Assembly: GCA_002269645.1 (NCBI GenBank)
Contig: NIVC01003192.1
Coordinates: 49,131-113,130, forward strand
Length of the DNA stretch: 64,000 nt
From: Macrostomum lignano
Lineage: Eukaryota
Direction: 5' to 3'
Part shown: positions 2,703 to 64,000 of the stretch, in pieces
How positions within the stretch are numbered: position 1 is the stretch's first letter
Layout of the letters: every line of letters begins with the position of its first letter
Translations under genes and position numbers: made by a program
The notes under the pieces: model-generated
The model's input: the letters and a program-made list of their open reading frames with translations, nothing else
What the model was told of the DNA's origin: nothing
The model's database searches: none

Positions 2703-2785
<83 letters not shown>

Positions 2786-2805: not shown

Positions 2806-2852
<47 letters not shown>

Positions 2853-2933: not shown

Positions 2934-3014
<81 letters not shown>

Positions 3015-3902: not shown

Positions 3903-4263
<361 letters not shown>

Positions 4264-32454: not shown

Positions 32455-33070
32455 CTTATGACTGGGGACTCTATGACTGAGAAGCTCTATTTCAATGACC
32501 GGGGAACTCAGTGGCTGCGAAGCTGTATGACCGGGGAACTCAGTGGCTGCGAAGCTGTATGACCGAGGAACTACTCAGTGGCTGAGAAGCTGTATGACCG
32601 GGGAACTCAGTGGCTGAGAAGCTCTGACTGAGAGTCTCTATGACCGATAATCTTCTGAAAATCTCTATGACTGAAAATCTCTATAACTGAGAATCTATAT
32701 CCGATTAGCTCTGACCGAGAAGCTCTATGACCGAGAATCTTTAGGATCGAGAATCTCTATGACCGAGAATCTCTATAACGAAATCTATGACCGAGAATCT
32801 CTATGACCTAAATCTATGACTGGGAATCTCTATGACCTAAATCTATGACCGAGAATCTCTATGACCTAAATCTATGACCGAGAATCTCTATGACCTAAAT
32901 CTATGACCGAGAATCTCTATGACCTAAATCTATGACCGAGAATCTCTATGACCTAAATCTATGACTGGGAATCTCTATGACCTAAATCTATGACCGAGAA
33001 TCTCTATGACCTAAATCTATGACTGGGAATCTCTATGACCTAAATCTATGACCGAGAATCTCTATAAACG
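32455..33070. repeat. ATGAC-core array ending in 29-bp dimers (ATGACCGAGAATCTCT + ATGACCTAAATCT)
   Basis: Graded array, degenerate at the left and homogeneous at 32780-33070. Confidence 0.85.
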
Positions 33071-41040: not shown

Positions 41041-41837
41041 TTTGTTGCTGCAATTTATGTTTTAGAAATATGTCAGTCTTGTGAACACTGTTGAAGAAGT
41101 TGAAACCAAAAAAATCTACTTATTCTAGCTCGTACCGTTTGCAGTATTAATAGCTACCCCGCAAAAGAGTTTCTTCCTTTCTTGCTTCTAGCTATATTAG
41201 TACAGCACCTTTGTACAGTTTGTGGGGTCGGGTGTAGAAATGTAGCATAGTGGATAGAGAGACGAAAATACGAGTACACTGCTGTTGTACATTAAATTGG
41301 CGTGCATTTCTACATGCAAGAGCGTACATGTAGTTCCCTTTTTCGTACATGCGTGACTCAATGCTTGAAATTTCCAAGAAAGAGAAGCTCCTGGCGTTGC
41401 AGAGCATATTCCCAGGCTAGCCAGACAATCCACTACACAAAAAATACGTGGCTAGCCAGGTGGCTCCACCGTGGGTCCACCTTGGCTAGCCCTTGCACCC
41501 GTGGACTCGGGGAATCAAATGAGTGAGTCAGACAGTTTCCCACGCTAAAAATAGCTTGTTGACGGGACCCAGCCAGGCGGCTGTGGAAAAGCAGACGCCA
41601 GAACTTGACTCGTATTGGTTGGCAAGATACATGGCACTAATTCAAAAAAAGAAAAAAAAATTTTTTGGCGCCATCGCGTGAGAACTAAATGCATTGACCT
41701 TGCCAGGGCGCTAAAATGGGCGCCCAAAGGCTGAAATTGGCGCCGGTATATTAAAATCGGCGCCAAAAAGTAGCAAGCTGATATATGCTGCCACTTCTAC
41801 GCCCGTTGGCAAATTCCAGCGCTGATTCGGCGATCCT

Positions 41838-43525: not shown

Positions 43526-45424
43526 AAGCGTCACAAGCGATGATTTAGGGATCGTTGCGCTAGTTATTACACTTGGCTTAGACCACCGGAAATTTATCTG
43601 TAGTATAACAAATGTAATAATTTATTGATAAAAAAAACTGATGCGATCGGTGGGTTCTGTTTTAGGAGAAAAAAATACGTTTATTTATTGTATTTGCATT
43701 TTATTTTACTAAAACACTTAATATGCCTATCTTTTGTGAACAAACTAACAGCCGCAAATCTAAAACAGATTTTTCTCGCGCTGCGTCATTAGTTCTCCTT
43801 GTTTCTTTGTTGGCAATAATTTTTTCTTCTAGCTATCATAAAAGCTATGGCTGATGTGTGTGTAGCCACGTATTCGCTAATCGCATAGCTTTTTTGTAAT
43901 ATATTAATTATTGTGTAAATATTTGTGTAAATTGTGACGTGTAGTTTGTAATATATGTAATTTTTTGTCATACATCATTGTGTAAATTGTGACGTGTAGT
44001 TTGTGTAAATATTGATACAATAGTAGTATGTGATGAAACTGACTTGCGAATGACCTGTCGACCTGATTCCTGGCACTTTTTGTGCTGAAATTGAGACGAG
44101 AAGGCCTTTCAAATCTAGATATATATTTGCATGAATTTAGTTATACAACTAGAGCATTATGGACATTCATTCAAGCATACAAACAAACCTTAGAGATTTA
44201 GTATATTTAGATTGTGTAATAATATAATATAGACCTTCAAGTTTGTAGGCAGTGCATAGAGCAAGGGCCAATAACAAAAAATAATATGGTGATCCTGGCT
44301 ACTTCAAATGAATACCTTCTAGAGATTTGAGGGCTTATTTGTGATGAATTAACTGATGAATCTGTGACAGTGACACAGCAACTGTGACGGTGTAGGACCA
44401 AGACCGCCACACACCAAGACCGCCACACTTGGGGGAGCTAGGGGGGAGGAATTTGGCTCGTCATGTTATTGGATGGTGCTGGGGAGGGGTGAGATGGGGA
44501 CGACAAGGCCGCGAGAGAGGAACCGGTGAGTGAGCGGGCCGGGTGGGTGCGAGACCGTGAGTGAGCCCTCGTTTTTTTCATTCAATTTGAATTGTAAAGG
44601 AACTATCAATCCTAAATAAACAGCTACTTTTAGTAGAAAGCTGTGAAAAAAGGCTCTTGACTTAACTACATTCTTAATTCGCAGTTTTGAGTGTGGTCCT
44701 TGAGTTGGTTGTCATTGTTATAATTTGTTATAATGTTAGTTTTCATGTGTGATTCGAGCATGTTCGATTGCCAATGTGCCATTGGTGAGTCGTGCAGCCA
44801 TACCGTTTTTATTACGTGTACATGTACAGGCTTCCTATAAAACGACACTCAAGTAGTCCGTGATATGTACTAGCTGGGCCTCGATCGAGTTGTACCGAGG
44901 CCTGGTAAGCAGCTTTCATATACTCACTTTTGAATCACTCAATCACTATATAACTCACTCACTCTCTCACCCTCTCATTTAGCTCACTCGCACACATGAT
45001 CACTCACTCAAAAGTTACTGTGATCGCTCTTAATACAATCAAAATGTATGGCACGAAAATGCATGTACATCACATGTACATGTAATCGTTTACTTTGATT
45101 TCGGATGTTCTCCCTGTTCATTAAAAAATACGTTCTAAAACTATTTGAACGTATAATAGCTATAAATGTACATTTGTACATCACATTGGGTACCAGTAGT
45201 ATACTCGTGCTTGTACGCCGTTCTGACCATACAACAGCCGGACAGTATGTCGCTACACTACTTGCTTTTAATTTACCATGCAATCAATTGGCAATGATCG
45301 ACCTGGTATACAGTATGCGCATTGTGTGATAGATACAGGTACATGTATATCCATGCTCTGTACAGCTAAATTGGATTAGGAAATAATCTCTCGAGGTCTC
45401 TCTTTAATTATCTCACACTGTCTC

Positions 45425-46108
45425 CTCTCTCACCCTCCCTCCACTCTCACCCTCTCTCCACTCTCAGCCTCTCTCCACTTTCAGTCTCTCTTTACTTTCA
45501 GCCTCTCTCCACTTTCAGCCTCTCTTTACTCTCACCCTCTACTCTCAGTCTCTTTCAACTCTCACCCTCTCTCCACTCTCATCCTCTCTTCACTCAGTCT
45601 CTTTCAACTCTCAGCATCTGTCCACTCTTACCCTCTACGGCTACTCTCAACCTCTCTCCATTTTCGGCCTCTCTTCACTCTCAGTCTCTTTCAACTCTCA
45701 CCCTCTCTCCACTCTCACCCTCTACTCTCAGTCTCTTTCAACTCTCAGCCTCTCTTTACTCTCACCCTCTACTCTCAGTCTCTTTCAACTCTCACCCTCT
45801 CTCCACTCTCATCCTCTCTTCACTCAGTCTCTTTCAACTCTCAGCATCTGTCCACTCTTACCCTCTACGGCTACTCTCAACCTCTCTCCACTTTCGGCCT
45901 CTCTTCACTCTCAGTCTCTTTCAACTCTCACCCTCTCTCCACTCTCACCCTCTACTCTCAGTCTCTTTCAACTCTCAGCCTCTCTTTACTCTCACCCTCT
46001 ACTCTCAGTCTCTTTCAACTCTCACCCTCTCTCCACTCTCACCCTCTCTCCACTCTCACCCTCTCTCCACTCTCACCCTCTCTCCACTCTCACCCTCTCT
46101 CCACTCTC
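45425..46108. repeat. CT-rich compound repeat inside the MULE
   Basis: CTCTCACCCTCTCTCCACT variants with a larger block duplication. Confidence 0.85.
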
Positions 46109-46112
46109 CGAG

Positions 46113-46315
46113 AAACAATGGGTGAGAAACAGTGGGTGAAACATTGGGTGAAACAGTGGGTGAAACAGTGGGTGAAACATTGGGTGAAACAGTGGGTGAA
46201 ACAGTGGGTGAAACAGTGGGTGAAACAGTGGGTGAAACATTGGGTGAAACAGTGGGTGAAACAGTGGGTGAAACAGTGGGTGAAACAGTGGGTGAAACAG
46301 TGGGTAAGAAACAGT
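46113..46315. repeat. 12-bp tandem repeat GGGTGAAACAGT, about 16 copies
   Basis: Direct observation. Confidence 0.93.
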
Positions 46316-46554
46316 GATTTTTTACCATAAAATTTATTTTTGGCAGTGGATTGATCGCTCTTCCAAAAATTCCAGAACTCTCATTGGCTGGGCGCTCATC
46401 AAATAGCAGTTATCCCCCCCCACTGATACGGGCCCCGAATTTTGAATTTTCTGTTTATGTATAACTGTATTAGATTAGCATATCTATATAATAAAAAACT
46501 GGTTTTCTGATATCGGAGCTTAAATAGTTTTTGATCAAGAAATATAGCATTAAA

Positions 46555-48420
46555 ATGGCAGGTGCATACCCATGTGTAGTGTGTGTGCAGCCTGTTGTCA
46601 ATGGAGAGGAAGCTATTGAATGCTCGCAGTGTAGCGAATGGCAGCATCGTGCGTGTAACAGTCGCGTAACGCCAGAGCAGTACGCTGCGATGAAACGTGT
46701 ACGCGAGTTTTTCTGGCTGTGCAACCGATGCCTTAGGCCAACTACAGGTGCGCCTTCATCTGCACCCTCAGCTGCCCCAGCAGCTACTGTGCCGCCAACC
46801 TTTTCAGGATCAGGACCAGGTGGTGAGCCTATTGACCAAGAGGAGCCATTGCTTCCAGTCCCTCATCTAGAAGTGGAAGAGAGGTTTTTATTTCAGTATC
46901 CCGATTTCGCTGACGCTGAACCTGTGCTCGAAGAATCAATTCACCAGCCTCCAGCAGAGTTGGCGCCGCCTCGTAGCCCACCTCCGCAGGCTTTTGAGCA
47001 TTTTCCAGGTGCTGGATTCAGCCACGGCAAAGACTTGCTGGTGCAGTACGTCAGGCGTGATCTTGGCCGCTTGATGCATGTCAAGAGCCGGCGAAACGGC
47101 AACACTTACTACCGTTGCAACAAAACTGCACCGAAATGCCTGGGCTCAGCCGTCAAGCGACAAGACGGAACCATTGAAGCCTTGAAAGAGCACACCTGCG
47201 ATCCAGTCGATCAGCCAGTTAAAAAACGACGTATTGCAGCTCAGGTAAAAGCGGAAGCAAAGCGAGCGCCATTCAAATCTGCTCGCATCATCGCTGAGGA
47301 GAAAGTAAGAGACCTCCCCCAAGAAGTGCAGGCAGTGATTAATATAGATTCCTTAAGTCGCAATGCTAATTATTCTCGTAAAAAAGCCGCCCCGCGGAGC
47401 CAGCTAACATCCATTTTCAGGTTGATCCCGAGCACGTGCCCCCAGAGTTCCATTTGCAGGACGTTACTGTGCCAGAGACAAACGGACGGCACTTTGTCTT
47501 CATGTCTGCGACACAACGGGAGATCCTGTCCACACGACGCATTCTGCACTGCGATGGCACATTCGGAATTGTCAAGGCGCCTTTCATGCAGCTGTACAGC
47601 CTTCATGGAGCCATTCGCTGCGACAATCAAGAGCGTCTGGTACCACTGGCATTCTTTCTGATGTCAGGTAAGGCTCAGGCTGACTACCAGGCCTGCTTCC
47701 GGCAGGTATGGGAGTTGACTGGTAATGCACCTGTCCAATTTATCTGCGACTTTGAGTCGGCCGCCTGGCAAGCCATTCGGCTAGTTTATCCAGCAGCCCA
47801 AGTTCGTGGCTGCTTTTTTCATTACTGCCAGGCTGTTTTCAGGCGAGTCCAGTCTCTTGGATTGCAGGTGCAGTATGCGACTTCCCCTGCGGTAAAGTTA
47901 TTAGTACGCATGCTGCTTTCAATTCCTTGTCTGCCGGCTCCTTGCATGCTAGATGGCCTTGCAGCCTGCACTGCAATGGCAGGAGAGAATCAGCGCCTTC
48001 TAGAGCTAACGGAATACGTGCGTGCAACCTGGCTACAGCACCCTGTGTGGGACCGGGATGCCATTTGCGTCTTTGAGCGGTTTACAAGGACGAACAATGC
48101 CGTGGAGGCTTGGCACGCGCAGCTCAACAAGCGTGGAGAGAAAGCGCTCAATTTCTATCTTCTGCTGACCCTGCTTCAGCGTGATGCAGAGCGGGTGCAA
48201 CGTCTGCTGCAGCAAGTTCATCAAGGCCAAGCTGTCACGCACCACCAGCAAGTGCATGCTACGTCGTAGGTACGCGCGAGTGAATGTCAGCTTTGAGACA
48301 TTCTGCCGACACCTGAGAGAGGGCACTATGTCGATTGCCGCATTTCTCCGGGCCTGCAGCCATATTCATGCGCAACCTGGATGGCAACAAGAGGGCGAGG
48401 ATGATGCGCAGCAGAATTGA
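46555..48420 (+). pseudogene. MULE transposase (PHD finger + FLYWCH-like finger + DDE domain) with two frameshifts
   Basis: PHD C-x2-C...C-x2-C-SEWQH-x2-C...WLCNRC; YYRC..C...EHTC; HCDGTF, ICDFE, GCFFHYCQAV, RTNNAVEAWH. Frame change at the A6 run 47380-47385 and again near 48240-48260 (C-terminus RRYARVN...FLRACSH is in another frame). Confidence 0.88.
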
Positions 48421-50835
48421 TCGCGATCTCTCCGTTTTGCCTGATTCAAGTGGCAACTTCTAATAATTAACCATTTTTTACTTAAATCGAGTTATAAATC
48501 TCATTTCATTGCTTGCTTAGCAAATAGTGCACAGGTAAAGCCATTAATTATTACCGTCTAACTAATGCCATCTTTTTTCGCACGCCATTATATTCTGCAC
48601 TTTTATTTCAGTCCATATGCGGCGCACAGGTAAAAAAGAAAAAATTTGCGCATTCGCTAAATTTGCATGCATCTTATTTACTGCACCTTCAGTTTTATTT
48701 CTCTGCACCCCCTGCTGGATTGTGGAGGCGGGGGCACATTTGGCTTGTGAGCGCTAATAACAAGATCTTCAACTTTTACACCGTGCTTAAAGCGAAATGT
48801 GCTGCCAGCTCCATAGGTCATCTCGAGCCCTAACTCAATGTGGCACTTATTTATATTTAATCTCTAATCCAAATATACTAAATCTCTAAGGTTTGTATGT
48901 TTGCTTGTCCATAACGCTCTAGTAGTATGCTAAAATTACTATATCTGCATGTACTAATGAGGTAGAACTAGATTGCACAATCACTGTTCAAACTGCACAC
49001 AGAATAGCCTGCGCAAAAAGTTCAAATTAATTTCAATACACGACCCCATCTCTGTCTGTGACCCCTCTCTACTACATCTTTGTCTCTCCTGCATCGAAGT
49101 TCTGATAGTTTAAATCAAAGCGACTTCTTTTCCAGCTTTGCATAACACTATCTGCATAAATTAGCTACTCCAGCAATAGCATATTGTCGGGCAAGGTAAC
49201 AAAAATTTATCACTTTTTTAGAATGAATGCATTGACAGCTGGCTTGGTCAGCCAACTGTCTCAGGGTTGTTATTAAATCAAGATAAAAAGCAAATACTCC
49301 ACCCAGTTACCACGAATAGATCGAATAGTAACAAAAAACAGCTGTACTTGACTTTTATCTCTTATAGGTTCTGACTTCATCGCTATAGCTATAGCTACAT
49401 GCAACGGCCGTGCATTTTTAATACCAAGCCATAAATCTTGAACGGAACGAGGGGCGTACTCAAAAAATTTAGGGGGGGGGGTTTGTTACGGAGAGAGGTG
49501 GCACTGGCAGACCCCGGAATTTTCCTCCCTCGACCCCTCCCCCTCTGGGTGCAACCCCTGAACTGCATGGACTCGAGTCGAGCTTAAAAAACTGTTTGTA
49601 TATATAACTGTGAGTTCCAATTAACGTACTGAATTCAAGAGGAGGGCACAAAAAAGATTTGGATAGTAACGCATTTTTACGAGGGGCCGGCGTTAGTGAT
49701 ATAGCTATCAAATATTCCAAAATAGCTGCAGGTAATAAATATTAGTGTGATGCAATTGAATTTCCGAGCAACGTATGTGGGCGCGGCATCTATATTGTAG
49801 TTGGTGTTCCCATGTGTAGAAGTGCAACCAAGCAAGGCCCCCGGATCTGCCAAGTGCAGCATGAGCATGAGGTCATGACCTCAGAATAACATACAAACTT
49901 TGATGGGACTAAAAGTTGCATCCCAGATGGGACTATGTAAAATAAAAAAATGATTATGCCTTTGGTCCGATCTTATGGTATTTTGCATATTTCGAACGCA
50001 TGTCCGCATAGTAGCTACATGTACTACTGTACTAACAGATAAATGCAAGCATTTTGCAAAAGTATGCAACCATTGTTTTCTCACAATTTGTTCGCAAATC
50101 TCCCTTCCATCTGCCCTATCCACTGATATCTTCAAGGTTGCAGGTTTTTTCACCAAATTCCAGCATCTCCACCGCATGGACTCCCGAAATATAAACGGAG
50201 CGAGCAGCTTATACGAGTTTATGCCGGTGCCCTTCCCAAAGTTGATTGGCAAGATTTAGAAAAGTATGTTCTTCGCTAATATCACATCTTTCTAATATAT
50301 CACATCACACCACATTACTTACGAGCGTATTTGCGAGCGGCAAGGCTACATGCAGTTTGTGCTTTACTCGTAAAAACGGCTTTGATTTCGCAAATATTTC
50401 CTTTTGCATAACGCTGAATGTGATTTCAGCTGCGGAAATTTCAAAAAATTTGACTGCTATTGATAATTCCTGATCGGCTAGAAAAAACGTCACAGATAGA
50501 ATGGATAACGTGTACATGTACATGTATCTTGCACTTATATGCACATACGTGCATCTCACATGTATTACATGTATTACATTACATGTATCAAGAAGTTTGG
50601 TACATGTATATTTTGGAGAGATGTCAGAATGTCAGAATCAGTATTTATCGATCAGTACCCTTTGAAAAAATGCATGTACATGTAGCTCACACTGTACCTG
50701 TGCAAAGTTGCCGCAGTGCGCGAGAGTAAACTATATTTGCATTTAAAAATCAGAGGCAAGAGATCAAATGTGTGAAAAATGCTGTAATTTGTGTATTATA
50801 GTGCCTGAAATTCAGAAATGAATTAAAAGCGCGAG

Positions 50836-51860
50836 AATGAGTGAGTGAGAGAGTAAGCGAGAATATAGGAGTGAGGGTGAGAGAGTGAGTGAGTGAGTGA
50901 GTGAGTGAGTGAGTGAGAGAGAGTGAGTGAGAGAGAAAGCGAGAATATAGGAGTGAGGGTGAGAGAGTGAGTGAGTGAGTGAGAGAGTGAGTGAGTGAGT
51001 GAGTGAGAGAGAGTGAGAGAGAGAGAAAGCGAGAATATAGGAGTGAGGGTGAGAGAGTGAGTGAGTGAGTGAGTGAGTGAGAGAGTGAGTGAGTGAGTGA
51101 GTGAGTGAGAGAGTGAGTGAGTGAGTGAGTGAGTGAGTAAGTGAGTGAGTGAGAGAGAGTGAGTGAGAGAGAAAGCGAGAATATAGGAGTGAGGGTGAGA
51201 GAGTGAGTGAGTGAGTGAGAGAGTGAGTGAGTGAGTGAGTGAGTGAGAGAGAGTGAGAGAGAGAGAAAGCGAGAATATAGGAGTGAGGGTGAGAGAGTGA
51301 GTGAGTGAGTGAGTGAGTGAGAGAGTGAGTGAGTGAGTGAGTGAGTGAGAGAGTGAGTGAGTGAGTGAGTGAGTGAGTAAGTGAGTGAGTGAGAGAGAAA
51401 GCGAGAATATAGGAGTGAGGGTGAGAGAGTGAGTGAGTGAGTGAGTGAGTGAGAGAGTGAGTGAGTGAGTGAGTGAGTGAGAGAGTGAGTGAGTGAGTGA
51501 GTGAGTGAGTAAGTGAGTGAGTGAGAGAGAGTGAGTGAGAGAGAAATCGAGAATATAGGAGTGAGGGTGAGAGAGTGAGTGAGTGAGAGAGAGAGAAAGA
51601 GAGAGAGTGAGTGAGTGAGTGAGTGAGAGAGTGAGTGAGTGAGTGAGTGAGAGAGTGAGTGAGTGAGTGAGTGAGTGAGTAAGTGAGTGAGTGAGAGAGA
51701 GTGAGTGAGAGAGAAAGCGAGAATATAGGAGTGAGGGTGAGAGAGTGAGTGAGTGAGAGAGAGAGAAAGAGAGAGAGTGAGTGAGTGAGTGAGTGAGAGA
51801 GTGAGTTAAAGAGAGAGTGAGAGAGAGAGAGAGAGAGAGTGAGTGAGAGAGTGAGAGATC
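50836..51860. repeat. (GAGT)n compound array punctuated by AAAGCGAGAATATAGGAGTGAGGGTGAGA
   Basis: About 1 kb inside the right arm of the MULE. Confidence 0.93.
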
Positions 51861-54560
51861 TCCTAACCCCCGGATCCATATATTCTCTCAAATTACATGT
51901 GCATGTACATTTACTCTCATCCCCTCCCTTTGCTTTCACCAAAATTCTCGGCTTTGAGTACACAATAAAATACACACAATAATGCTCGTACATTTACACA
52001 GACATTCTCATAGGCATTGGGCCTAAGATGCGCTTTTTCTGTTATGTGAGTGAACGATAGTGGTTAACTTGCTTTCGTCAAAGTACATGTAAACCTTCGT
52101 CAAAATGAATGGCACCTCTAAATCCACGTACCATAGCACAATATCAAGCCGCTAGATTTGTTTGTCCGTAATAATGCACTAGACGCACCCAGACGCCGAA
52201 TATACACTCAAATAATCGTGCGAGCTCGTAAAAAAACTTTTCAAATTACAGCAACTTGCAATTGAACTTTTGAGAGGCTTTTTGAAAGTGAAGTTAAAAT
52301 TAATTACTCAAGCTTTTGCTCTCAAAAGCATTATTCATGCTCATCCACTGCTAAAAGTAACAAATTGTGCTTTTGTTAAAGATATTTTTAAAATTGCCCT
52401 TGTTGGCTTGCAATCGTTTTGGGCCACTTAATTATTCATCTTATTCCTGACCAATCTTGGGACGCTTCTTCCTCATCTAACTCCACAACCCATCACAACC
52501 AATAGCAATGCTGGAAGATTGGTAGCTCCCCCTCAATTCCAGTAGCCAGTAAGAGCTGTGGCGGTCTTGGTGTGTGGCGGTCTTGGTCATGCGCCACTGT
52601 GACCAGAGTATTAAGAATTTTTTTAAACTTTAAGCATCTTAGATATGCTTGTCATATGTCAGTGACAGTAGATCTCATTTGTTGCTAGACAGCAGGTTGG
52701 TTGAAGTACTACTTCTTAAATAGCTAGGTAACAGCATTGCTCTTAGGCTACAGTCCCACTTTGTATTTTTCATTGCACACCTTACACTTAAATAATCTTT
52801 TTCCTATATGCACCTTGGAGTCAAGAGTGGAATATATAGTGAGTAGGGCCTATGTTAGGTGGCTCATTCCAGCCAGATAAGATAGACATATTTGGAAAAT
52901 AGTAAAAAGTCAATATTTTGCTCACCATTGCCTTGCTAGCTAATTTTTCTGCCAAATGTTCTTTATGTATAATATAAGCCTATACTAGCATACAATCTAA
53001 AAATAAAGGCAATTGTCATTTGTCCAGTTACTGGATTATGACCATGCTTTCTTATTCATCTAGTTAATACTGGACAAATAGACATTTTGTTATTTGTCCA
53101 ATTAAATTAATAATGCTAAAAAATCTATTTCATAGAAACTACAAGGATAAATATTCCTAGACTTTAAAGACTTCTTATTTGTATCTTGATTATTAGTTTA
53201 TTATGTTGTTATACTAGTGTGTCTTATATACAAAATTATGCCAAATTGAATACATTGCTTTGCTAACAGTATATAAGAAAATATTAATTAATATACAAGA
53301 AAAGGTCTTAAAAATTTAGAATATTCATCATAAAACAAACAGATACTTGTGTTAGCAATTTAAGCAGACAAATAGCAAAAAGGCTATTTGTCCAGTCATT
53401 GGACAAATAACAAATGCCAAAAATGAATGGTAAAATGTTGGATTAGTATAATATCAGTTGGCAAAAAGCTATTTTTATAAAAAATTGGACATTTTTTTAA
53501 GCAAAAGACATCATTAACTTTGTGTACCTTTTGAAAACAAATAAAAAGCTTTGGAAGATTGAAACAAACTATAGATAAAATTATAGTATTTGCATAATTA
53601 GATATAAACATTAATGGCCATATAATCTATTAAATTTTTAATCTATTGGTAATTCAAAGTTAGTGAATTGACAGAAAAAAGTTAAAACCATAATGTTATG
53701 ACCATAAGGCTGCCTATTCTTTTGTACCTTTGTTGCCTTTAAATAAGTTTAAATATTCTAATAAAAAAGTATGATTTCTTTAGATGTTCTTAGTCAAATT
53801 AAAAAACAGAATATCAAAAATGATAAATGTTAGGGCCTATTTAAGACTTTTATCTATTAGTTTCTATATGTTTCTATATTGTTATCAAGCCTAAGAAGAA
53901 CTTTTTCAGTGCATGATTCTGTGACTATAAATATGTAAATATAATATTCATATAGAATTCTTTTTGTTAGGATAAATAATATATATTTATATATTATAAT
54001 TTATTGGAATATTCCAAATAAAATAAAACTGATAAAAACTTTGTGGGCATTTGTGTTGTGGCTCATTAAACTGCAACTATTAAAACAAAAAATGTATACA
54101 TCTAAAATTTATAAATTAAAATCAAAGAGCCACTATATGCAGGTAGGCCTACCCTTTTTCATAGACATAAGGACCCAGAAAAGACTTGTAAGAAAATACA
54201 ACAATCAAGAATACAAGATAAAGTGGAAAATTTAGAAAACATATTCCAAAGCATCCCAATTACACCAAATAATAATTTAAGCTGCTTATTATATACTTAT
54301 AAACACAACTCAATGCAATATGGCTATGGATAACAAATTATAGACTATAAATCTGCTAGATTTTAATCAACTTTAATCAAATCAGCTGATGCTCCAAGCC
54401 AGCCACTGCCTGAGCTGCAATGCCTGAGCAGGTTGCCTTGCAGGTGGCTGAGCAGATGGCTAAGCACCTGCTCTAAAAAGACACTGATATAGATAAACAC
54501 CTTTTGAGCTTAGCATATGATGTAATATACAATTCAGAATGATCCTCACGAATTTCAGCA

Positions 54561-57408
54561 ATGATTTCGTCAAGAAAACTAAATGCGAAATCGAGAAAAA
54601 GACAATCTGAAGTAGTACTGATGACTGGCCAACGCGGAAGGCCAAGGATATTGCGAACGTCTAATGCGCCTAATGCATTGGAAAGTACTACATCGATTGC
54701 CACGGCTTCCTCGTGTTCCACAGTCACTGGCGGCAGTCTTTCACAAGATCTGGGTGCAGGAAACCATGACTCTATGCCTGAACAGATTAGTAATAAGTTT
54801 GAACAGCCGCCTAAATTCACGGAATGGGAAGACTACACGGCCATTGTGGAAAGTTACACTGCCGGTTATAAACAGTCATTCGAGTTAAAATGCTGTGTTC
54901 GTTGCGACATGCAGCCTGGAGTTTTCCGATGCGTTCATTGTCAGTACGATGTCTGCAGTGATTGTAAAAAGATAACGCATGGAAATTTTGCTGCTCACAA
55001 GTTCCTCCAGTGGAATGTAAGTTGTTTTAAAATCTAAATTGCAATTTCTAAGGATATTAGTTTACTGTGAAGAAAACAATGACGCCTATTTGGCAGTATA
55101 ACGCTGTATTAAATTTGACGTGAAACAAAAGTATTTAGAATGCTAATAGCCTTAGTACGGAATAATATTTTTATAACACCGCATACAAAATTTAACCCTT
55201 TTTCCTAGGCTCAATCGCTAATGTTTGAAGACATTCAAGAAGAAGAGCCTGTCTCTCTATTCTGCTGTAGCGAATCAAGCTTGTCTTCTGAGTTTACAAC
55301 ATCATCCGAAATTCAGATTATTGACATCAACGGAATTGTTTGCGCCAGAATTTATACGTGCCAATCCTGTGATAAAGTTGATGCCATGCTAGCAAAAGGA
55401 TACTTTCCTGGAAGCGAGTCACGCGTTGGCGAATTGTTAACATTTTTTTCAATTAGCTTTCTATCAACTCTTGACTCCTTGTGCTTTGACGGTCAACTGC
55501 CACTGTCTCGTGCAATTACCTGTCTTTTCAAAGGCTCCGTCGTAGGACAAGGTCGCTGGAACCCTGGTTTAGCCGATCGAGTGTATCAGAGATTGCAGCG
55601 TAATGGAGTCCTACTGCGGTTTCGAGAGTTGCAGAGGTGTTCAGCAAGCTGGCCTGCTAGTTGTCTTTTGTGTCCTGACCAAAATTCAAGTCGGAAGTCT
55701 GTAGTTTGTGCTGATGCTCTATTTGGATGGCGAAGACTACAAAGTATGGGTTCGAAGCAACGTCTAGTGCCAGATTCTGAACGCTCATTGCCGTCACCGC
55801 TTATTCATGTAGAACCAGCAACTGTACCGCCTCCTACGACACAAGTGTCTGCAGAAGGCTGCACTAACTGGAAGGCTGGAACAGAAAAACCCGTGATCAG
55901 GGCCAGCAAGCACGATGTCAACGGTTTCTTTGGCTTATTTTGCCGGCATAACAGGCTTCTGACAGGTTGCAACATTATTACAGCTGGTGAGGGCCTGTGC
56001 TATCCAGAACAGACTCTTCGTCATTACCTAATGACACAGCCCGTCTCAAAGGATCTCATTTTTATCTATGATGTTGGTGAGTTGATTTTTATCGTGTTTC
56101 TATCATGCTGCACTTATTTACACTATACACTTATAGTGTGTGCTTACTTATGCTTGTGCTTACTTATGTACGTGCATGCGTACTGCGACACGAAGCTCAA
56201 TTATTTATTCATTTAAAAACTTTTTCCTAAAATCAGGTTGTCGCATTTCCAATCGTGTCAAGTCCATGGTGTCAGCATCTGGTGTACAGCTTAACAGTGT
56301 CACGTGCGCTGTGAACGCCTTTCATGTGCTGGGCCACGAGAGACAATGCCAACTAAAGTACTCCGTGCGGGTAACTCCTGGAGCGGGTCTTTGCGACGGG
56401 GAGAATACGGAGCGCGCTTGGTCTGCACTACGACCGTTTGGTAAAAGCTTAAAGTACATGCGGTCCGATCGCAGAAGTGCTTGTATGTCTTACATTTTGC
56501 ATTGCTTCAATGCTAATCAGTTGTTGTACGCCTCCAATTGGTTTTCTGCTCGATTAAAACTAATAACTCGCACAGCCGCGTCTTGTTCAGCTGAAATGGA
56601 GCAATTGCTTCTACAAGCTGGCGATTTGATGCGGAACAACAAATTAACTATTCCTGCCGGAATCTCTGAGGTAGCCATTTTAAATCTTGCTCAACAATGG
56701 CATGCAGAAGCCATAAATCCCAATAGCGACTCTCCATTGAGCAGGGAACCTTACGCAAAGCTTAAGGCACTTGCTTTGGAACGATTCTATTGGATCCGTC
56801 AGAGTGGCTGCTCAGATGGACAAAAAGAAAATCGAGCATGTCTACGCAAGGTTGCGGCTTTAAATGCAGACATTCGAATGGCCGCCCGCTCGCTTCCGCC
56901 AGGCCTTCGCGTGCCCACTATGATTCAGCTTCGCGACTTCCAGTCAGACTTCTACTTCGGTCTTTCGATCGATGTGTCTGAGAGGTTCAAGCGACGGGTG
57001 GTTGACTTGTATCACAAGCTGAATCGTCTAGCGGAGGAAAAGATCATTATTGTGCAAGAGTGGCGTGACGTTCAAATTAAACTTGAACAGCACTGTGAAA
57101 CACTCCATCATCAACCTGGATTGCCAGCCCAGTTTCGATGCCTCTTTCAGACTATTTTAAAGCAACTTCAAGCTCTTCGCTTTGATCACATTGACGCAAG
57201 CATTGAAGCTGCTGCTGCTGATGCGCAGCATCCAAACGACGCTGGTACCAACGTAAATCAGCCAGATGACGTTGAAGCCCGAGTCATTCAGACGTTGAAT
57301 CAAGTCGTGAGCAGTCTGAGTCAGATGAAGAATGGATTGATAGTATTTAATTCCGAAACTCGATTACTTGAAACTGTTATCCATAGGATAATCATATTTC
57401 GGATGTAA
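54561..57408 (+). CDS. KDZ (Kyakuja-Dileera-Zisupton) transposase with CxC cysteine cluster; exons 54561-55016, 55209-56076, 56237-57408 (about 830 aa; true start uncertain)
   Basis: C..C...FRC.HC...C..C...H...H finger; CxC-like region with GYFP; core motifs VCADALF, GLFCRH...GEG..YP, IYDVG|GC (across a phase-1 intron), AFHVLGHERQCQ, GLCDGENTERAWS. All splice sites are canonical and the joined frame is open. Confidence 0.85.
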
Positions 57409-57513
57409 ACTAGCTTGTTTACATGAAATTCTAAACCAGTTTATAAACGTATACCGATTTCTCTTAGAAATTTACTGTAAAGTTTACAGCCTACCAAAGT
57501 AAGCAGTATTTCA

Positions 57514-57805
57514 GCTTTCAAAAAGCTGGCCGCTTTGCATTTCTTGCTGTGGCTTCCCGCTCTTAGTGGCGGGATTGATCCTTAGTTCAATGCTGCAAAA
57601 GACCGCTGTGCACTGTTTACTGTGCTGTGGAATTTGTTTTGCTCTGCAAAGTGAACTATGGATTAACCCCCTGAACGGTGTTCGGCCTCTTCGTGGCTCA
57701 GGGGATCCACGATTCACTTTTAGAATCGGCTAACTGAGCACCATTTTTTCTTGTTCATTTTTCTTTTATACTTCTGTTAACAATTTTAGATATTTGCTTC
57801 ACTGA
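57514..57805 (+). repeat. 292-bp direct repeat, copy 1
   Basis: Appears identical base by base to 61494-61785. Confidence 0.95.
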
Positions 57806-58510
57806 TTGAAATTTATAACTACGAGCAACTTTCTTGAATGTGTTTTATTCTCTCGTTTGTATTACTTAATATTTCATGCATTTATATGCAGTCGCCTGTC
57901 GTTGCAGCGAGAGGCGCATATGCGTCTTACTTTTGTCCCTTTTCGTTGTACTACACTTTGACACTCACTGCAATTTGTCAGTTCTCTTATGTTAGCCTGC
58001 GTTTAGACGCCCGCTATGCCAATAGTATATTTGCATACTGCTTCAAAGATAGCGCGAAAGTATAATAAAAGTGGAACTAGTAATCGTGATATACACATTT
58101 TTGTCTTTTACTTTTGTTACGTGTTAACCATAAGCAATAGCAGTGACCCATCCCGCCATGCACTCATTATCCCATTTATAGCAGCACTTTAGGCTTGGCT
58201 GGGGAGATTGAAAATGTAACTGCCCACACTAACTAATGGCACCCTGCTTGGCCTGTAGCCTTATTGACTCGGACTCGAGGGTTTCAGTTGAGAGGAAAGG
58301 ATGTTCATGTTGGAAGATAGACCTGGTTCCGATCAGAGGATAGGAGATTCAGATGTGAGATTCAGAATTTTTTATACTCTAAAGCATTTCCTCTCCGTCA
58401 TTGTCTTAGAATACAAAAATTAAGACTTAATTTGCCTAACCTCCCTGGAAGCAGTATAATAATAAGCCCACAACGTTTTCCCGATGCTCTTGAATGTCAC
58501 CCGCGGGACA

Positions 58511-59101
58511 ATGTCTCACATGGTGCAGGTTCATACGCAGATTTCCTGTTTGATCTGCAATGCTTGGACAGGACGCGCATCTGGTTTCAAGGTACATTGC
58601 AATCGAAAGCACCCTGATGCCACTGAAGAGCAAATTGATGCCACAATCCGCCTTTTTGGACTTTTAAAGGCAAAGAAGCGAACCGAATCGGGTTACCTCT
58701 ATCAGTGTCCTGTTTGCAGTGTTATCACTTCGAATTTACCAAGCCATGTTAGGGTAAAACATGGAAAGCAATCTAAGACAAATGGAAATTCGCAATCTAC
58801 CTATAACTTAGACGAGGCTAAAGAAAACGCTGAAGTTTTAATTTCTAAGCTGCAATCACTAGCCGCCAGGAACCCCTCCGAAAAGTGTGCCGATTCACAG
58901 CTCTCCGGTCCAAGTGTTTTACGTTCAAACATTTTCAATTGCCCTGATAGCCATTGTACATGCCCCTGCCACAGTTGTAGTGTAACTACGTTAGACAATG
59001 ATTTCAATGGCTTTTTTAATCCAGCTTCTCCCAGCGTTTCGTTGCAACAAAATGCAAATCCTACAATTTCGAATTCCGTTTCACTACTCGATTTGCTTTA
59101 A
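58511..59101 (+). CDS. Double C2H2 zinc-finger ORF (separate gene or upstream exon of the SET gene)
   Basis: CLIC...HCNRKH and CPVC...HVRVKH fingers plus a Cys/His cluster CPDSHCTCPCHSC. Confidence 0.65.
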   Translation: MSHMVQVHTQISCLICNAWTGRASGFKVHCNRKHPDATEEQIDATIRLFGLLKAKKRTESGYLYQCPVCSVITSNLPSHVRVKHGKQSKTNGNSQSTYNLDEAKENAEVLISKLQSLAARNPSEKCADSQLSGPSVLRSNIFNCPDSHCTCPCHSCSVTTLDNDFNGFFNPASPSVSLQQNANPTISNSVSLLDLL

Positions 59102-59386
59102 AACTTCAGTGTGACTGGCAACCTAATGCTACTATGCAGAAATTCGGGACTGTAATGCGTTATCAAGTCCGTTGTATCGCCCAACCTTTCAAATAAACAT
59201 TTGATTTGATCTGTTCAGCTGCCTTTTATTATTGTCCTGAGACTACGAGCGAGCGGAACATGCCTTCTTTGCTTTCAGTCTGACAGTCTTTAAGAGTGCA
59301 TTGTAAAGTACCTATTACCAAGATGCCTAGTTCATTCATCTTTCACCGTAGTTAAAGGTTTCATTTTGATTTTTCCTCATTTTCAG

Positions 59387-61425
59387 AAAGTTTGCGCGAC
59401 ACGTTTTATCGAGAACTAAATTTTACTCTAAACGTTTACGTTGAAAACTTGAATCAATTCAATATGGACCCTGACCAGTTTATTTGCCCGATGTGTGACT
59501 ATTCCACCAATCGGTCCGCCACCCTCCTTCGACACGCTCGAAGCAAGCATACAGCAAACTACGATCGAGTCGAAGCCTACATTCTCTACAAACGTTGGCA
59601 TGGCAAAAGAGATTTAAAGCTTTGCCAGCTGTGCAGCTCATTTGCCGCCTCTAATATGAGACAACACATGCGGCTGTGCCATTTCGGCGAAGCATTTGTT
59701 GTCGGCCGTGCAGCCGTAGCTGATGCGAGGGCAAGGGCATATGACAGAATTGAGGGCCTGCGGTTGTTGGCCTTTTACGGCATCCGGCCTCAACTAAATC
59801 TTAATCCAGCCTTGCCGCTTGAAAGCCTGCCGGAATCTGCCGCCGCTATAACAATGGACGCGGACTTAGCTACCGACGCTGAAATGGCGACCTCCAATGA
59901 GGTGTGTTAAACTAAAATTTGTGTCCATGGTTTTTTGTTGTTAAAACGCTGCGGCCTGTAACCTTGAAAGCATCAGGTCGCGGGTCAGGTCAGGTCGCAA
60001 CTTTTCTTAAAAAGTTGAATGTTTGGTAAATTTGAGAAGATGAAAGTGAAAAATGAATAAATAAAAGCTTTTAGATACTTTGCTCAAAAGGAAATATTAG
60101 GGATTAACAACAAGGGGTGGGGTCTTTTATGCTGGCCCATGGTTTATGGTGTAGAGCAATTATCTTACCATCAGCTGGGTTGCATGTATGTTTAATGAAA
60201 ATAACAAAGGGTTACGTTCATCTTTAATTGCATGTTGTAACCATTATGATGTACTTTTTTCTTCACTGTCAGGTTCCCCTTAGCGTTCGGCTCCAAAGAG
60301 GAGAAGCCAATAAAGATGGCCTGTCCAATGATCCGCCTTTCGAGCCGACTGTGACTTCGCCTGAGGACTCAAATAGCCACGCTGCTGCGGTTGCCCCTCC
60401 TGCAATGGCAGCTAATCGCGAGCTTCTGGTCCCGGAGTCTGCCGCTGCTGCAACTATAGACGTCGCCTTATCTACCGACGCTGTACCGGCGACCTCCAAT
60501 GAAGTAAGTTGGTCAAACTAAATGAAGTCCACAGTTTATTGTGTGAAACAGTGTTCTTAGGAACAATTTTGTTGCATGTTTATTCAATGCAAAGATTAAA
60601 GCGTTGGGGTTAATCTGCATTTGTATGCCGTTACCACTATGAATCATTTGTCCTCTTCATTTTCTTCACTGTCAGGTTCCCCTTAGCGTTCGGCTCCAAA
60701 GAGGAGAAGCCAATAAAGATGGCCTGTCCAATGATCCGCCTTTCGAGCCGACTGTGACTTCGCCTGAGGACTCAAATAGCCACGCTGCTGCGGTTGCCCC
60801 TCCTGCAATGGCAGCTAATCGCGAGCGTCTAGTCCCGGACACTATCACAACTCCGGACGGAGCATGCACGCCGCTCCTTCACGTGACGCCTCACGGCCGA
60901 GCTAGCCGTGGGAGTCCAGAGCGATCCCTGCCGACCGAAATGGCGTCTATGAGGCAACTCACTATGGCCGATGTGGTTCGACAGACAATGATTTCTACCG
61001 GCAACGTCGTGGTTCAGGCCGGTAGCGTCGACGCAGAGGGTCTGGGGGCATTTGCCCGTACGGACCTCCCAAAAGGCACTGTCGTCTGTACTTACGGTGG
61101 AGAATTAATCCAAGGACAAAAAGCACGCCTCGCCCGGGAGGAAGATATTGTAAAGCAAGGGAAGCCATGCTGCTTCTTGTTTTTCTTTTCCTGGCGAGAT
61201 CAAGCTTATTGCATCGACGCAACCAACACTTTCCAGTACGTCGGTCGGTACATTAACCATAGCCGGCGAAGAAATAACTTGAAGCCGATTGTTGCTGATG
61301 TAAACAATAAACCGCATCTGGTCTTCCAAGCCATTCGAGACATTGCTCGAGGCGAGGAGCTACTCTACGATTATGGAGAAAGGCGCTCGGATGTGCTTCG
61401 ACTGCATCCGTGGCTTAAAGACTGA
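59387..61425 (+). CDS. C2H2-ZnF-SET protein, SET8/PR-Set7 (KMT5A)-like methyltransferase; exons 59387(ATG 59464)-59901, 60273-60503, 60676-61425
   Basis: Fingers CPMC..HARSKH and CQLC..HMRLCH; phase-0 GT-AG introns; SET motifs GLGAFA, TYGGELI, YCIDAT, GRYINHS, IRDIARGEELLYDYGER and terminal HPWLK characteristic of SET8. Confidence 0.85.
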
Positions 61426-61493
61426 AAGGCTAAGTTTATTCTCTGAAACCATCAGCCCCCGTTGCATGGGGAGTTCGCTATAAGATTTTATCG

Positions 61494-61785
61494 GCTTTCA
61501 AAAAGCTGGCCGCTTTGCATTTCTTGCTGTGGCTTCCCGCTCTTAGTGGCGGGATTGATCCTTAGTTCAATGCTGCAAAAGACCGCTGTGCACTGTTTAC
61601 TGTGCTGTGGAATTTGTTTTGCTCTGCAAAGTGAACTATGGATTAACCCCCTGAACGGTGTTCGGCCTCTTCGTGGCTCAGGGGATCCACGATTCACTTT
61701 TAGAATCGGCTAACTGAGCACCATTTTTTCTTGTTCATTTTTCTTTTATACTTCTGTTAACAATTTTAGATATTTGCTTCACTGA
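61494..61785 (+). repeat. 292-bp direct repeat, copy 2
   Basis: Appears identical to 57514-57805. Confidence 0.95.
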
Positions 61786-61909
61786 CCTACATGTATATTA
61801 TCTTATAAATGGCTTTTGCTTCTATTTCAGATACTGCTGGTCTAGATATGGTGCATTAGTGCAAATGTGCCATGGTCTGTTTGCTACATGATGCAAAAAC
61901 TTATCACAA

Positions 61910-63450
61910 CAACAGTCCCCGCGTGTCCTAGTTTGACCCATAACAGCTCCGTGTCCTCAATTGACCCTCAACAGTCCCGTGTCCTCATTTGACCCCTAAC
62001 AGTCCTGTGTCCTCATTTTACCCTTATAGTTCTGTGTTCTCATTCGACCTCTAAGAGACCTTTTGTGTCCTTTAACCTCTAGAAGTCCTGTGTCCTTGTT
62101 TGCCGCCTAACAGTCTCTTGTCATTTCTTTCGCCCCCAGAGATTCGGCAGCACTACGAGAAACGCCTGCATCGTGTGGACGACCTCCAGATGGACCTGAC
62201 CAATCTTCGCATGCAGCTGCAATTGCAGGTCCTTGCGGAGCGCGATCGTTCGGCTAAACTGCGCTTCATCATTCGGCGCCGCTGTTGCCGCGCCTGCCAG
62301 CAGAGCCTTCGAGTCGAGCCGTCTGCTCTCGCCAGCAGCTGTCGGCAGCCGTTGTCTTGGACCAGCCTCTACTCGACGCCACGGCCGCAGCCGCCGTCGC
62401 CGCTGCCGCGTCGATGGCCACCGACTCTTTAACAACAACTCTGCCGCAGCAGTCTTCGACGGAGCAGGCGTCGTCCATGTCGCCCAGTCTTGGCGATCTC
62501 GGCGGCCGACCCAGGCGGGCCAATCGGCGACTGTCAAAGGCGCTGACGCTGCCGCCTTGTTCCGACGGGGTGGTGCGCCGCCTCCGCCGCCGCCGTCACA
62601 ACTGTTGGCCAGGTAAGGACAGTTGACCCCTGCGCACTTTTTTTGCCCCAAATAACCTCTGTCTTCAATGACCCCACGGTAGATGTTTGCCCTCAAATGA
62701 TCTTTACGTATATTAGTTTGTCCTCAAATGACCTCCAGATAGATTCTGTCCTCAAATGACCCCTGGGTAGACTTTTGTCCTCAACTGACCCCAGGGTTGA
62801 TTTTTGTCCTGAAATGACCTCTGCTTAGAATTATTGTCCTCATTTGACCCCTTTCCTATTCTTATCTCTCGCGCAGAGACGCCTGAGTGCAGGGGAGCCG
62901 CAGCTGCGCGCCCGTTCCGGCCGTCGGCGATACCCGGCATCGGGAGCGACCGGCTCTGACAGCCAGCAGCAGCAGCAGAAGCAGACGGTGGTGGCTAGAA
63001 AAATTTATTTGCCACTGGCGAATACTACCGGCGCTGCTGTGTTAGGCAGCAATACTATGGGTAGTAGGACTGCTGCTAACGCTGCTGCCGCTACAACCGC
63101 CTTCGATGTGGCCGCTTGTTTAGCCGCATCGCTGGCTGGGGGCAACGACGATAGTCGAGACGGCGAGACCGACTCCCGGCTAGGCTATAATCGATCGGTG
63201 AGCTGGGAAATTTTATCAACCCATGTTAATGTATGACTCACCACTTTATATGCGTGCAACTAAACATGTGATACCGTCATGATGTTTGTGACCTTAAATG
63301 ACCAATACTCATGTCCCTAAATAACCCCTTGTCTTGTCCTACATGACCCCTGTCCGTGTCCCTAAATATCGACCTTTCATGGCATATATTTCCTCATCCT
63401 TGAATGACCTCATTTATCATCATCTCCCTGTCCTCAAATGGCCTTTCAAA
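61910..63450. repeat. Degenerate ~20-bp GTCCTCATTTGACCCC repeats in three consecutive intronic patches (about 61910-62100, 62625-62850, 63290-63450)
   Basis: The same core motif recurs only between the GC-rich exon-like blocks. Confidence 0.7.
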
Positions 63451-63591
63451 AACTCGGTCGCCACCCCTAACCTGCAGGCCTCCGCCGATCCGAAATCCGA
63501 GGACGACCTCGATCTTGATGTCAAAGTGGATAACGATGACGAAGATTACGAGGCGAATTCGACGCCACACTGTCTGGTCACCAGCAGCTGA
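62140..63591 (+). CDS. 3' exons of an unidentified host gene (coiled-coil then low-complexity); approximate exons 62140-62612, 62877-63198, 63479-63591
   Basis: GC-rich blocks with pyrimidine-rich CAG acceptors and GTAAGG/GTGAGC donors; EIRQHYEKRL...LQVLAERDR coiled-coil and acidic tail. Frames do not join cleanly, so indels or pseudogenisation are likely. Confidence 0.4.
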
Positions 63592-64000
63592 ACTCGGAGC
63601 CGAATTTCCGGCTGAATTCGTCGATTATTTAAAAACTGCACTAGCATGCGCTTGCACTACTGTCCTTAAGTAGCTAGTTGTAGCTGTTTAACTATTATCT
63701 GCGGTGTCGGTCTGTTTATGGACTTTTTCAATTTATCTGTTATTTTTCCATCCCTCACTTTTCTCTCGCTTTGGTAGTACGCTCGTAAAATATTTTTTAT
63801 CGTTTTCTTATCAGTGCCTCGTTTAATTTTACCTATAGCAGTAGATAGTGCCTACTATTGTATTTTTTCTCTTCAACTTTATTACTTTAATTGTTGGTCT
63901 TTTAACAGTTTTTTAAATTTGGTTGGGCAGACAATTTTCAGCTTAATCTTTTTTGCGGCTGTTTTTTGTAATTAGCTTGGCGTCTTATCTGTGACAAACA

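Follow-up and report, generated by a model that had tools for sequence, protein, structure and literature searches.

Related elements and proteins

Transposons that carry enzymes acting on the epigenetic marks of their host are rare, and they show mobile DNA fighting or exploiting silencing. Within the KDZ (Kyakuja-Dileera-Zisupton) elements, fungal families carry TET/JBP genes, which are known from other elements too, and the fish Zisupton a Ulp1 protease. Here we describe a locus of the flatworm Macrostomum lignano at which a KDZ transposase gene is followed, on the same strand, by a gene encoding a zinc-finger (ZnF) protein and by a gene encoding a ZnF-SET protein, the SET domain of which resembles that of the histone methyltransferase SET8. 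The locus lies within a stretch of 64,000 nucleotides (forward strand positions 49,131 to 113,130 of contig NIVC01003192.1), which we refer to as the window; coordinates are those of the window unless another locus is named. An earlier note on this DNA had proposed, from the sequence alone, an animal KDZ transposon with a SET8-like methyltransferase for lysine 20 of histone H4 (H4K20) and zinc-finger cargo, and the host is indeed an animal. The three genes recur together in a second, diverged KDZ lineage of the same species (family B, as opposed to family A of the window), and the two lineages that carry them are the ones that have multiplied.

The proteins with which the locus can be compared are diverse. 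KMT5A (also SET8 or Pr-Set7) is the canonical H4K20 monomethyltransferase. VANC of VANDAL21 is the anti-silencing factor of an Arabidopsis Mutator-like element (MULE), and Harbinger has a Myb-like DNA-binding partner protein. SETMAR is a primate fusion of SET and mariner parts, i.e. a host gene that captured a transposase, and PRDM9 combines a SET domain with a C2H2 array.

The nearest of the described systems are the KDZ elements themselves (the fungal TET/JBP families, the fish Zisupton, Cryptococcus KDZ1-3 and KDZx1). The flatworm locus shares with them the PF18758 transposase, with what may be its N-terminal Cys cluster, and a large unit (here ~9 kb or more) with extra open reading frames (ORFs), which include an accessory enzyme for chromatin or DNA modification, like TET/JBP. 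It differs in its host and in its accessory, a SET8-like methyltransferase fused to C2H2 fingers next to a stand-alone C2H2 paralog; in addition, neither its ends nor any target-site duplications (TSDs) were found and its mobility is putative. The likeness to VANC and to the Myb-like protein of Harbinger is a functional analogy only: these are transposon-encoded, sequence-specific DNA-binding accessories that act on the DNA of their own element, be it against silencing or for recruitment of the transposase, whereas the flatworm proteins (C2H2 with or without SET) have no sequence kinship with them and would act on their own DNA by conjecture. SETMAR and PRDM9 likewise join SET methyltransferase activity to a part that binds DNA, of transposase origin or made of zinc fingers, and so histone marks are placed at specific sequences; in the flatworm, however, SET and transposase are separate genes, and PRDM9 belongs to another PR/SET subfamily and has a long array of tandem fingers.

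A SET histone methyltransferase gene on a DNA transposon is as such not new, as HarbingerS and MuDR of Phytophthora are stated to encode one (Kojima & Jurka 2014, in the citation given by PMC12730594). Those elements belong to PIF/Harbinger and Mutator rather than KDZ and to a host of another kingdom, and that citation reports no C2H2 targeting module for them. The combination of KDZ and SET, which the earlier note believed to be undescribed, had no account in the literature that we searched, nor was there any mention of Macrostomum KDZ elements or of the genes Mlig004599, Mlig022522 or Mlig001681. Any novelty would lie in the pairing, and the general idea of a transposon-borne SET gene was known before.

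The KDZ transposase gene

The part of the window from 52593 to 64000 aligned with the M. lignano GenBank contig NIVC01000910.1 at 99.8% identity, with 27 differences that were mostly indels of 1-3 nt, and it therefore represents another assembly of the same locus. Both the KDZ gene (BOX15_Mlig022522g1) and the ZnF-SET gene (BOX15_Mlig022522g3) are annotated on that contig. The KDZ gene, the double-ZnF ORF and the ZnF-SET gene described in the earlier note, all on the + strand, were each recovered where it had placed them. The KDZ gene consists of three exons:

54561-55016, + strand: first exon of the KDZ transposase; covers the N-terminal region and its B-box-like Cys/His cluster; donor GTAAGT at 55017
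55209-56076, + strand: second exon of the KDZ transposase; CxC-like region and, with CADALFG and IYDVG, the first half of the KDZ domain
56237-57408, + strand: third exon of the KDZ transposase; remaining half of the KDZ domain (DGENTER) and a C-terminal region that is helical

The introns are of the GT-AG type and the spliced product of 831 amino acids (aa) matched BOX15_Mlig022522g1 with 98% identity over 100% of the length. Pfam domain KDZ (PF18758) was found on the two exon-encoded halves (68.2 and 32.9 bits, cut-off 26.6), and a profile search recovered 2737 relatives. All columns that are at least 90% conserved in 108 KDZ relatives are present in the A-type protein, and the conserved residues that it has kept comprise D321, D440, E497, E500, C304, C307, C397, H399, H471, H475 and C479. 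The CxC1 domain in the N-terminus scored 16.6 bits, below the cut-off of 26.9; the B-box-like Cys/His cluster is conserved among all M. lignano KDZ paralogs.

The gene had been called intact, which calls for a caveat at the C-terminal tail. Where the sister copies read CCCC, the window reads CCC (57278-57280), and by this frameshift the acidic tail ...PSHSDVESSREQSESDEEWIDSI*, which is conserved among the paralogs (stop at 57348-57350), is swapped for an unrelated 47 aa. NIVC01000910.1 also reads CCC; the frameshift may be real or a homopolymer error.

Beyond Macrostomum, the nearest relatives form a metazoan, Zisupton-like group of uncharacterised proteins from Priapulus, Astyanax, Branchiostoma, Apostichopus and Lytechinus. 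In a word-indexed protein search the nearest matches outside Macrostomum were fungal KDZ proteins, at 26% identity. We also noted a 2360-bp contig (L013, Logan SRR19430222) with a third member of the clade formed by the A and B KDZ proteins, which is ~41% identical to both and has the acidic tail.

The zinc-finger and SET genes

The two genes that follow the transposase gene are arranged as follows:

58511-59101 (ORF opens at 58484), + strand: stand-alone double-C2H2 gene with two C2H2-type fingers; the family B orthologue is at 15185-16057 of locus L002
59464-59901, + strand: ZnF-SET exon 1; the same double-C2H2 module, with a splice acceptor upstream at 59387
60273-60503, + strand: ZnF-SET exon 2; in-frame linker exon
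60676-61425, + strand: ZnF-SET exon 3; linker and SET8/KMT5A-like SET domain

The stand-alone ZnF gene probably starts at 58511, because the ATG at 58484 reads CAG in the other assembly. Its product and the N-terminus of the SET protein have a module of ~110 aa in common, which contains two C2H2 fingers (ligands C8, C11, H24, H29 and C54, C57, H68, H73) and then a conserved helix. When the four modules of families A and B were aligned the C2H2 ligands were invariant, and the fingers resembled the generic CTCF type.

The ZnF-SET protein is 100% identical to BOX15_Mlig022522g3 and contains a Pfam SET match (3e-20). Its second exon was made by a 403-bp tandem duplication (60257-60436 = 60660-60839, 98.9%) that spans an intron end and an exon start; this exon is absent from one protein model (P0001, 409 aa) and present in the models of sister copies (486/497 aa).

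As to the type of SET domain, a sequence search of PDB (phmmer) gave human KMT5A as the best match (E 2.5e-27), with an alignment that reaches the C-terminal HPWLK motif, followed by the Cryptosporidium SET-domain protein 4ldg (2e-17) and by EZH2, the next recognised SET family (2e-13). The catalytic and cofactor motifs GxG, NHS, ELLYDYG and HPWLK are kept in the A protein, and GxG, NHS, ELxYDY and PWL in the A and B proteins alike. The SET part of an AlphaFold2 model of the family B protein had a predicted local distance difference test score (pLDDT) of ~90, and in a Foldseek search with this model the top 15 matches were all human SET8, with target-normalised template modelling (TM) scores of up to 0.81. 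Both sequence and predicted fold thus assign the SET domain to the SET8/KMT5A type, and the designation SET8-like that the earlier note had chosen is borne out. The identities between SET domains were 39% for A versus B, and 38% and 29% for A and B, respectively, versus human SET8. KMT5A differs in that its N-terminus is a long regulatory region, in place of the double C2H2 module of the flatworm protein. From its multiple copies, its constant position beside KDZ and its double-C2H2 N-terminus, the ZnF-SET gene does not appear to be the canonical KMT5A orthologue. Word-indexed protein searches, most of them cut off at 8000 candidates, returned neither the canonical M. lignano KMT5A nor a wide sample of SET8-like proteins.

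Recurrence of the trio and copy number

The family B locus (L002, BOX15_Mlig001681g7) contains the same three genes on one strand: KDZ (10001-12512), ZnF-SET (13235-14233) and ZnF (15185-16057). The ZnF-SET gene, which encodes 300 aa, lies 723 bp downstream of the KDZ gene. Identity to the proteins of the window is 48% for KDZ, ~35% (tblastn, whole exon 3) or the 39% of the SET-domain alignment for SET, and ~31% for ZnF. KDZ intron 2 is kept between the families, and the gene order is KDZ > ZnF > ZnF-SET in A versus KDZ > ZnF-SET > ZnF in B.

Within family A, genes for KDZ proteins that are more than 90% identical were found on 9 contigs, as Mlig022522g1 and six Mlig004599 genes (proteins PAA74961, PAA45899, PAA53469, PAA62375, PAA62894, PAA88394, PAA48173, PAA57295 and PAA52736), and ZnF-SET genes likewise on 9 contigs. 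The GenBank accession of the SET gene is consecutive with that of the KDZ gene in every case, which we take to mean that the two are adjacent; the pair is thus present in 9/9 copies, and the proteins encoded are nearly identical. Family B (Mlig001681 and Mlig018136; e.g. PAA68011, PAA68009, PAA50163, PAA77513, PAA85732, PAA47524 and PAA88778) occupies about 8 contigs and has 8 KDZ gene records, with the SET gene on 4 contigs. Four more distant KDZ lineages (C-F: Mlig007768, Mlig032550, Mlig024767 and Mlig019149; ~24-33% identity) occur on 1-2 contigs each, and tblastn of the 10 kb to each side of them found neither SET nor ZnF genes. These SET-less lineages serve as an internal control for redundancy of the assembly. 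In this assembly, amplification of KDZ lineages is confined to the two that carry SET and ZnF genes, A and B, and these have multiplied recently. The earlier note had suggested a check of other KDZ copies for the SET gene: A and B do carry it and the four distant lineages do not. It would have counted against its proposal a SET gene that was single-copy, syntenic with canonical KMT5A in relatives and missing from other KDZ copies; the SET gene turned out to be multi-copy, and the KDZ copies closest to that of the window carry it.

We considered whether an ordinary KMT5A, or an unrelated host gene, might simply lie beside a KDZ transposon by chance. The SET domain is SET8-like, as this explanation would have it, in the comparison with human SET8. 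Against it, the trio recurs at the B locus with proteins that are only 31-48% identical, the KDZ-SET pair recurs in all nine A copies, the double-C2H2 N-terminus of the SET protein is paralogous to the adjoining stand-alone ZnF gene, and the A and B SET domains are about as distant from each other as from human SET8. We regard a chance neighbourhood as extremely improbable, and the recurrence of the trio effectively refutes it. The KDZ, ZnF and ZnF-SET genes have been handed down together, as one unit, in two families of ancient divergence, and their linkage is not due to chance. The tie between these genes that the earlier note had drawn is in this respect strengthened.

A fourth, small gene belongs to the same neighbourhood in family A:

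63057-63629 (pieces 63057-63203, 63469-63555 and 63552-63629), + strand: gene for a 98-aa acidic protein (P0215 = BOX15_Mlig004599g5/g28)

On 6 contigs its accession numbers stand next to those of the SET and KDZ genes, and it belongs to the same transcriptional-unit cluster. The protein lacks any Pfam domain, and family B showed no counterpart of it. At 63551 the window alone reads GG, where the other assembly has GGG, and this produces a frameshift. Since indel differences occur between the two assemblies, this frameshift and the one at 57278-57280 may be sequencing errors rather than decay.

Direct repeats behind the genes

The earlier note had tied the KDZ and SET genes together by a 292-bp sequence found behind both, and this sequence is present. 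It extends to a pair of 295 bp with one mismatch (at 57513), of which 292 bp are exact:

57511-57805, no strand assigned: direct repeat copy 1; starts 103 bp past the KDZ stop codon
61491-61785, no strand assigned: direct repeat copy 2; starts 65 bp past the SET stop codon

Family B shows the same design with another sequence. A repeat of 553 bp occurs there twice, 100% identical, behind KDZ and SET, and a 254-bp copy (97%) lies behind ZnF; the 553-bp repeat begins within the last 47 coding nt of KDZ. The A and B repeats are unrelated (local alignment z = 1.1), and neither was found at the other loci examined. For these reasons the repeats appear to have arisen, or to have been homogenised, recently and independently in the two families, unlike the coding genes, whose divergence is ancient. 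Taken together with the 403-bp duplication and the permuted gene order, this suggests either that gene cassettes recombine often or that a shared element, 3' or intercistronic, evolves in concert. As RNA, the repeated 3' segments folded into more stable structures than shuffled controls (z = -3.9 for 57511-57805 and -2.2 for L002 12601-12854), and they could possibly be a structured element of the 3' untranslated region.

Alternatively, the two 295-bp copies might be independent insertions of a dispersed short interspersed element (SINE) or miniature inverted-repeat transposable element (MITE), or an assembly artefact, and would then be uninformative on the genes. The hairpin-rich fold and the sharp ends of both copies would fit such an insertion. 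Set against this are the absence of further copies from the window and from ~240 kb of other M. lignano loci, the absence of any Rfam match at E <= 1 (52000-64000 scanned) and of any tRNA- or SINE-type match, the same orientation of both copies within 65-103 bp behind a stop codon, and the unrelated B repeat with one copy behind each of three genes. An artefact is contradicted by the presence of both copies in two assemblies. We hold this explanation of the repeats to be quite improbable.

The upstream leader and satellite

Upstream of the KDZ gene lie two further segments that have counterparts in family B:

41579-41822, + strand: leader of 245 bp with three AAATTGGCGCC copies; common to the B locus and a candidate part of the unit
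41823-43533, + strand: satellite array with a unit of ~159 bp, itself made of 20-bp subrepeats with GGCGCCAATTT; 40 motifs

The segment 41579-41896 is 91.6% identical over 321 bp, in the same orientation, to L002 616-935, which is far above the identities of the genes. The satellite that follows in B is of the same family and has 166 GGCGCCAATTT motifs (leader and satellite together at L002 616-7319), and the motif is inverted in the leader relative to the array. If the insertion of a MULE described below is discounted, the satellite lies 2.8 kb upstream of the KDZ start codon in A, and 2.7 kb in B. It was absent from the loci L003, L010-L012 and L014 and from the rest of the window, and in ~170 kb of other M. 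lignano sequence neither leader nor satellite was met again. All that the noncoding parts of A and B have in common are the leader with its satellite, a remnant of a MULE terminal inverted repeat (TIR) and microsatellites. The leader and the GGCGCCAATTT array could be a candidate array of binding sites, or a mere mark of a satellite compartment that the two families share.

Possible mobility of the unit

We lean towards reading the unit as one copy of a family of multi-gene, Zisupton-like KDZ elements that carry the ZnF, ZnF-SET8-like and acidic genes. A and B each have ~8-9 near-identical copies on separate contigs and the SET-less lineages do not, which is what self-driven amplification predicts, and every conserved residue of the catalytic region of KDZ has been retained. 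In one of the B copies (L006) the common sequence breaks off within a 387-bp satellite, and the flank that follows matches no other copy or locus examined. Moreover, low-copy KDZ elements without TIRs are documented as mobile: the Cryptococcus KDZ elements, whose mobility is experimental, measure 6.4-10.9 kb, occur in 1-7 copies and have extra ORFs, and KDZx1 among them lacks TIRs, as do the Kyakuja families. Missing TIRs therefore do not exclude membership of KDZ.

Several observations weigh against this reading. Neither TIRs nor TSDs nor an empty site came to light for the KDZ unit, and its ends were not located, without which TSDs could not be sought: searches for TIRs with 44000-54600 against 57400-71423, and with the leader against all downstream sequence, gave at both loci only AT-rich matches of 14-19 nt at chance level. 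The shared boundaries for which the earlier note had proposed a test were not found, and of its KDZ element the linkage as a heritable unit stands and a transposon in the strict sense is putative. The three B copies of which the DNA was read are colinear over at least 9.5-18 kb, into satellite arrays on both sides, and one contig has two B-type KDZ genes; this fits segmental or tandem amplification. (The same three copies are 100% identical over the trio, so that no ratio of nonsynonymous to synonymous substitutions could be derived.) The KDZ-SET genes bear introns, are apparently processed like host genes and were left unmasked in the repeat annotation of the genome authors, as can be gathered from the fact that transcripts overlapping repeats were left out of the GenBank set (PMC5730564). 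A scan of 40 long KDZ relatives from other animals, 4 of which carry Ulp1, turned up no SET domain, and SET8-like genes on two other eukaryotic contigs (L007 and L008) had no KDZ neighbour; two further SET8-like matches were left aside, as their contigs were too short or had no DNA. M. lignano is so far the one species from which the pairing is known. Finally, the ZnF part of the AlphaFold2 model had a pLDDT below 50 and was left uninterpreted, and the substrate and the DNA target of the methyltransferase are putative.

The two contigs just mentioned, which come from metagenome assemblies, contain SET8-like fragments (L007 1202-1591 and 10001-10531; L008 10001-10465) amid piggyBac-like and pogo-like transposase fragments. 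In other organisms SET8-like genes may be recurrent passengers or neighbours of mobile DNA.

Much of the above would equally be expected of a domesticated or immobile host module derived from KDZ, which was passively copied and shuffled by unequal exchange in a satellite-rich compartment. The same satellite family upstream of A and B and the other satellites downstream, the colinearity of the B copies up to the edge of satellites, the two B KDZ genes on one contig, the lack of TIR and TSD, and genes that have introns, share a transcriptional unit and are unmasked as repeats all agree with it, and local recombination has been frequent, to judge from the locus-specific direct repeats, the tandem exon duplication and the permuted order of the genes. 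It accounts less well for the confinement of near-identical copies on separate contigs to the SET-carrying lineages, for the intact conserved residues of KDZ and for the L006 copy that runs into a flank of its own, and the mobility of TIR-less, low-copy KDZ elements takes away from its argument on termini. We consider it a possible, though rather unlikely, account of the locus. Even if the unit were immobile, a transposase, a DNA-binding protein and a histone methyltransferase would still have been kept together as a cluster, which would be a possible route to new chromatin regulators.

The 387-bp satellite array varies in copy number and orientation among the B copies, and one locus has a scaffold gap of 296 N. 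Downstream of the B trio (L002 17149-22512) we observed a segment of ~950 bp that is repeated 4.4 kb apart and flanks this array.

Another transposon has been active at the locus. A MULE of 8.2 kb (44389-52595), with PHD-finger and MULE transposase ORFs (46531-48269), is inserted 2 kb upstream of KDZ; it has imperfect TIRs of ~40 bp (44389-44430 and 52556-52595) and an 8-bp TSD, ACTGTGAC. It is missing from NIVC01000910.1, where the empty site was found (L001 ~3186-3193), and it therefore represents an insertion polymorphism and recent MULE activity. TIR, TSD and empty site, none of which was found for the KDZ unit, are all present in this insertion. At ~1.7-1.8 kb upstream of the B KDZ gene (L002 8181-8303) there is a remnant of the same MULE family, made up of a TIR and a subterminal piece in inverted orientation. 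The similar relative position in A and B may reflect a preference of the MULE for this upstream region.

Expression and a possible function

In the Mlig_3_7 annotation the prefix of a gene name denotes a transcriptional unit and the suffix.gN the genes that are cut from it at trans-splice and poly(A) sites (PMC5730564). The KDZ (g1) and ZnF-SET (g3) genes both bear the prefix Mlig022522, Mlig001681 is common to the B genes, and the SET protein model of a sister copy (P0217) starts exactly at the acceptor at 59387, which is likely a trans-splice site. Because of the common prefix and of this start, the genes would seem to be co-transcribed as one unit and separated by trans-splicing and polyadenylation, as far as the annotation names indicate.

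From the encoded domains the following mechanism can be proposed. The C2H2 module would bring the methyltransferase, and also the small ZnF protein alone, to specific DNA, candidate targets being the GGCGCCAATTT array of the element itself or the repeated 3' segments. At the target, the SET domain would monomethylate H4K20 or modify another lysine, and the local chromatin so marked would favour expression, replication-coupled repair or transposition, or would counter silencing by the host, in parallel with TET/JBP of the fungal KDZ elements. A role in anti-silencing or expression is plausible since, as a statement in PMC8379281 has it, H4K20 monomethylation opens chromatin; the mark might just as well serve replication, or repair after excision.

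Carried further, this would make the unit a self-marking mobile element, in which the C2H2 module binds the element's own repeats (the upstream leader and satellite with GGCGCCAATTT, the repeated 3' segments, or both) and the SET8-like enzyme writes H4K20 monomethylation. The element would thereby have a chromatin state of its own, one that holds it open and expressed or links it to replication and repair, and this would explain why proliferation is confined to KDZ lineages with a SET gene. In that case the role of the small ZnF protein would be to recruit the transposase or to act as a competitor of the ZnF-SET protein. We put this forward as a speculative and rather doubtful proposal; if true, the element would be an animal counterpart of the fungal KDZ elements with TET/JBP, acting on histones instead of DNA. 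The broader reading as a KDZ-borne, ZnF-targeted SET8-like enzyme would, if true, extend the theme of transposon-encoded epigenetic enzymes to histone H4K20 methylation in Metazoa. Transgenesis is available for M. lignano, which has been described as an experimental model (PMC5730564), and the idea is therefore directly testable.

Other features of the window

Just upstream of the leader, an ORF lies on the - strand (39754-41040). It contains GLHYKKDGTLDMR(F/Y)SSS motifs in repetition and, after them, the beginning of a protein kinase domain (Pfam 4e-16), and is probably an ordinary host gene. The window as a whole is unusually dense in mini- and microsatellite arrays, including pairs of inverted arrays:

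663-1066, 1393-1846, 2618-3101, 3899-4265, 4883-5456, 6247-7955 and 9057-9624: satellite arrays
15523-17317, 25824-26600, 28133-30174, 32495-33073, 45396-46316 and 50831-51858: satellite arrays
25824-26182 versus 26346-26600, and 28133-28958 versus 29822-30174: inverted array pairs

These arrays are consistent with the published description of the M. lignano genome as rich in simple repeats.

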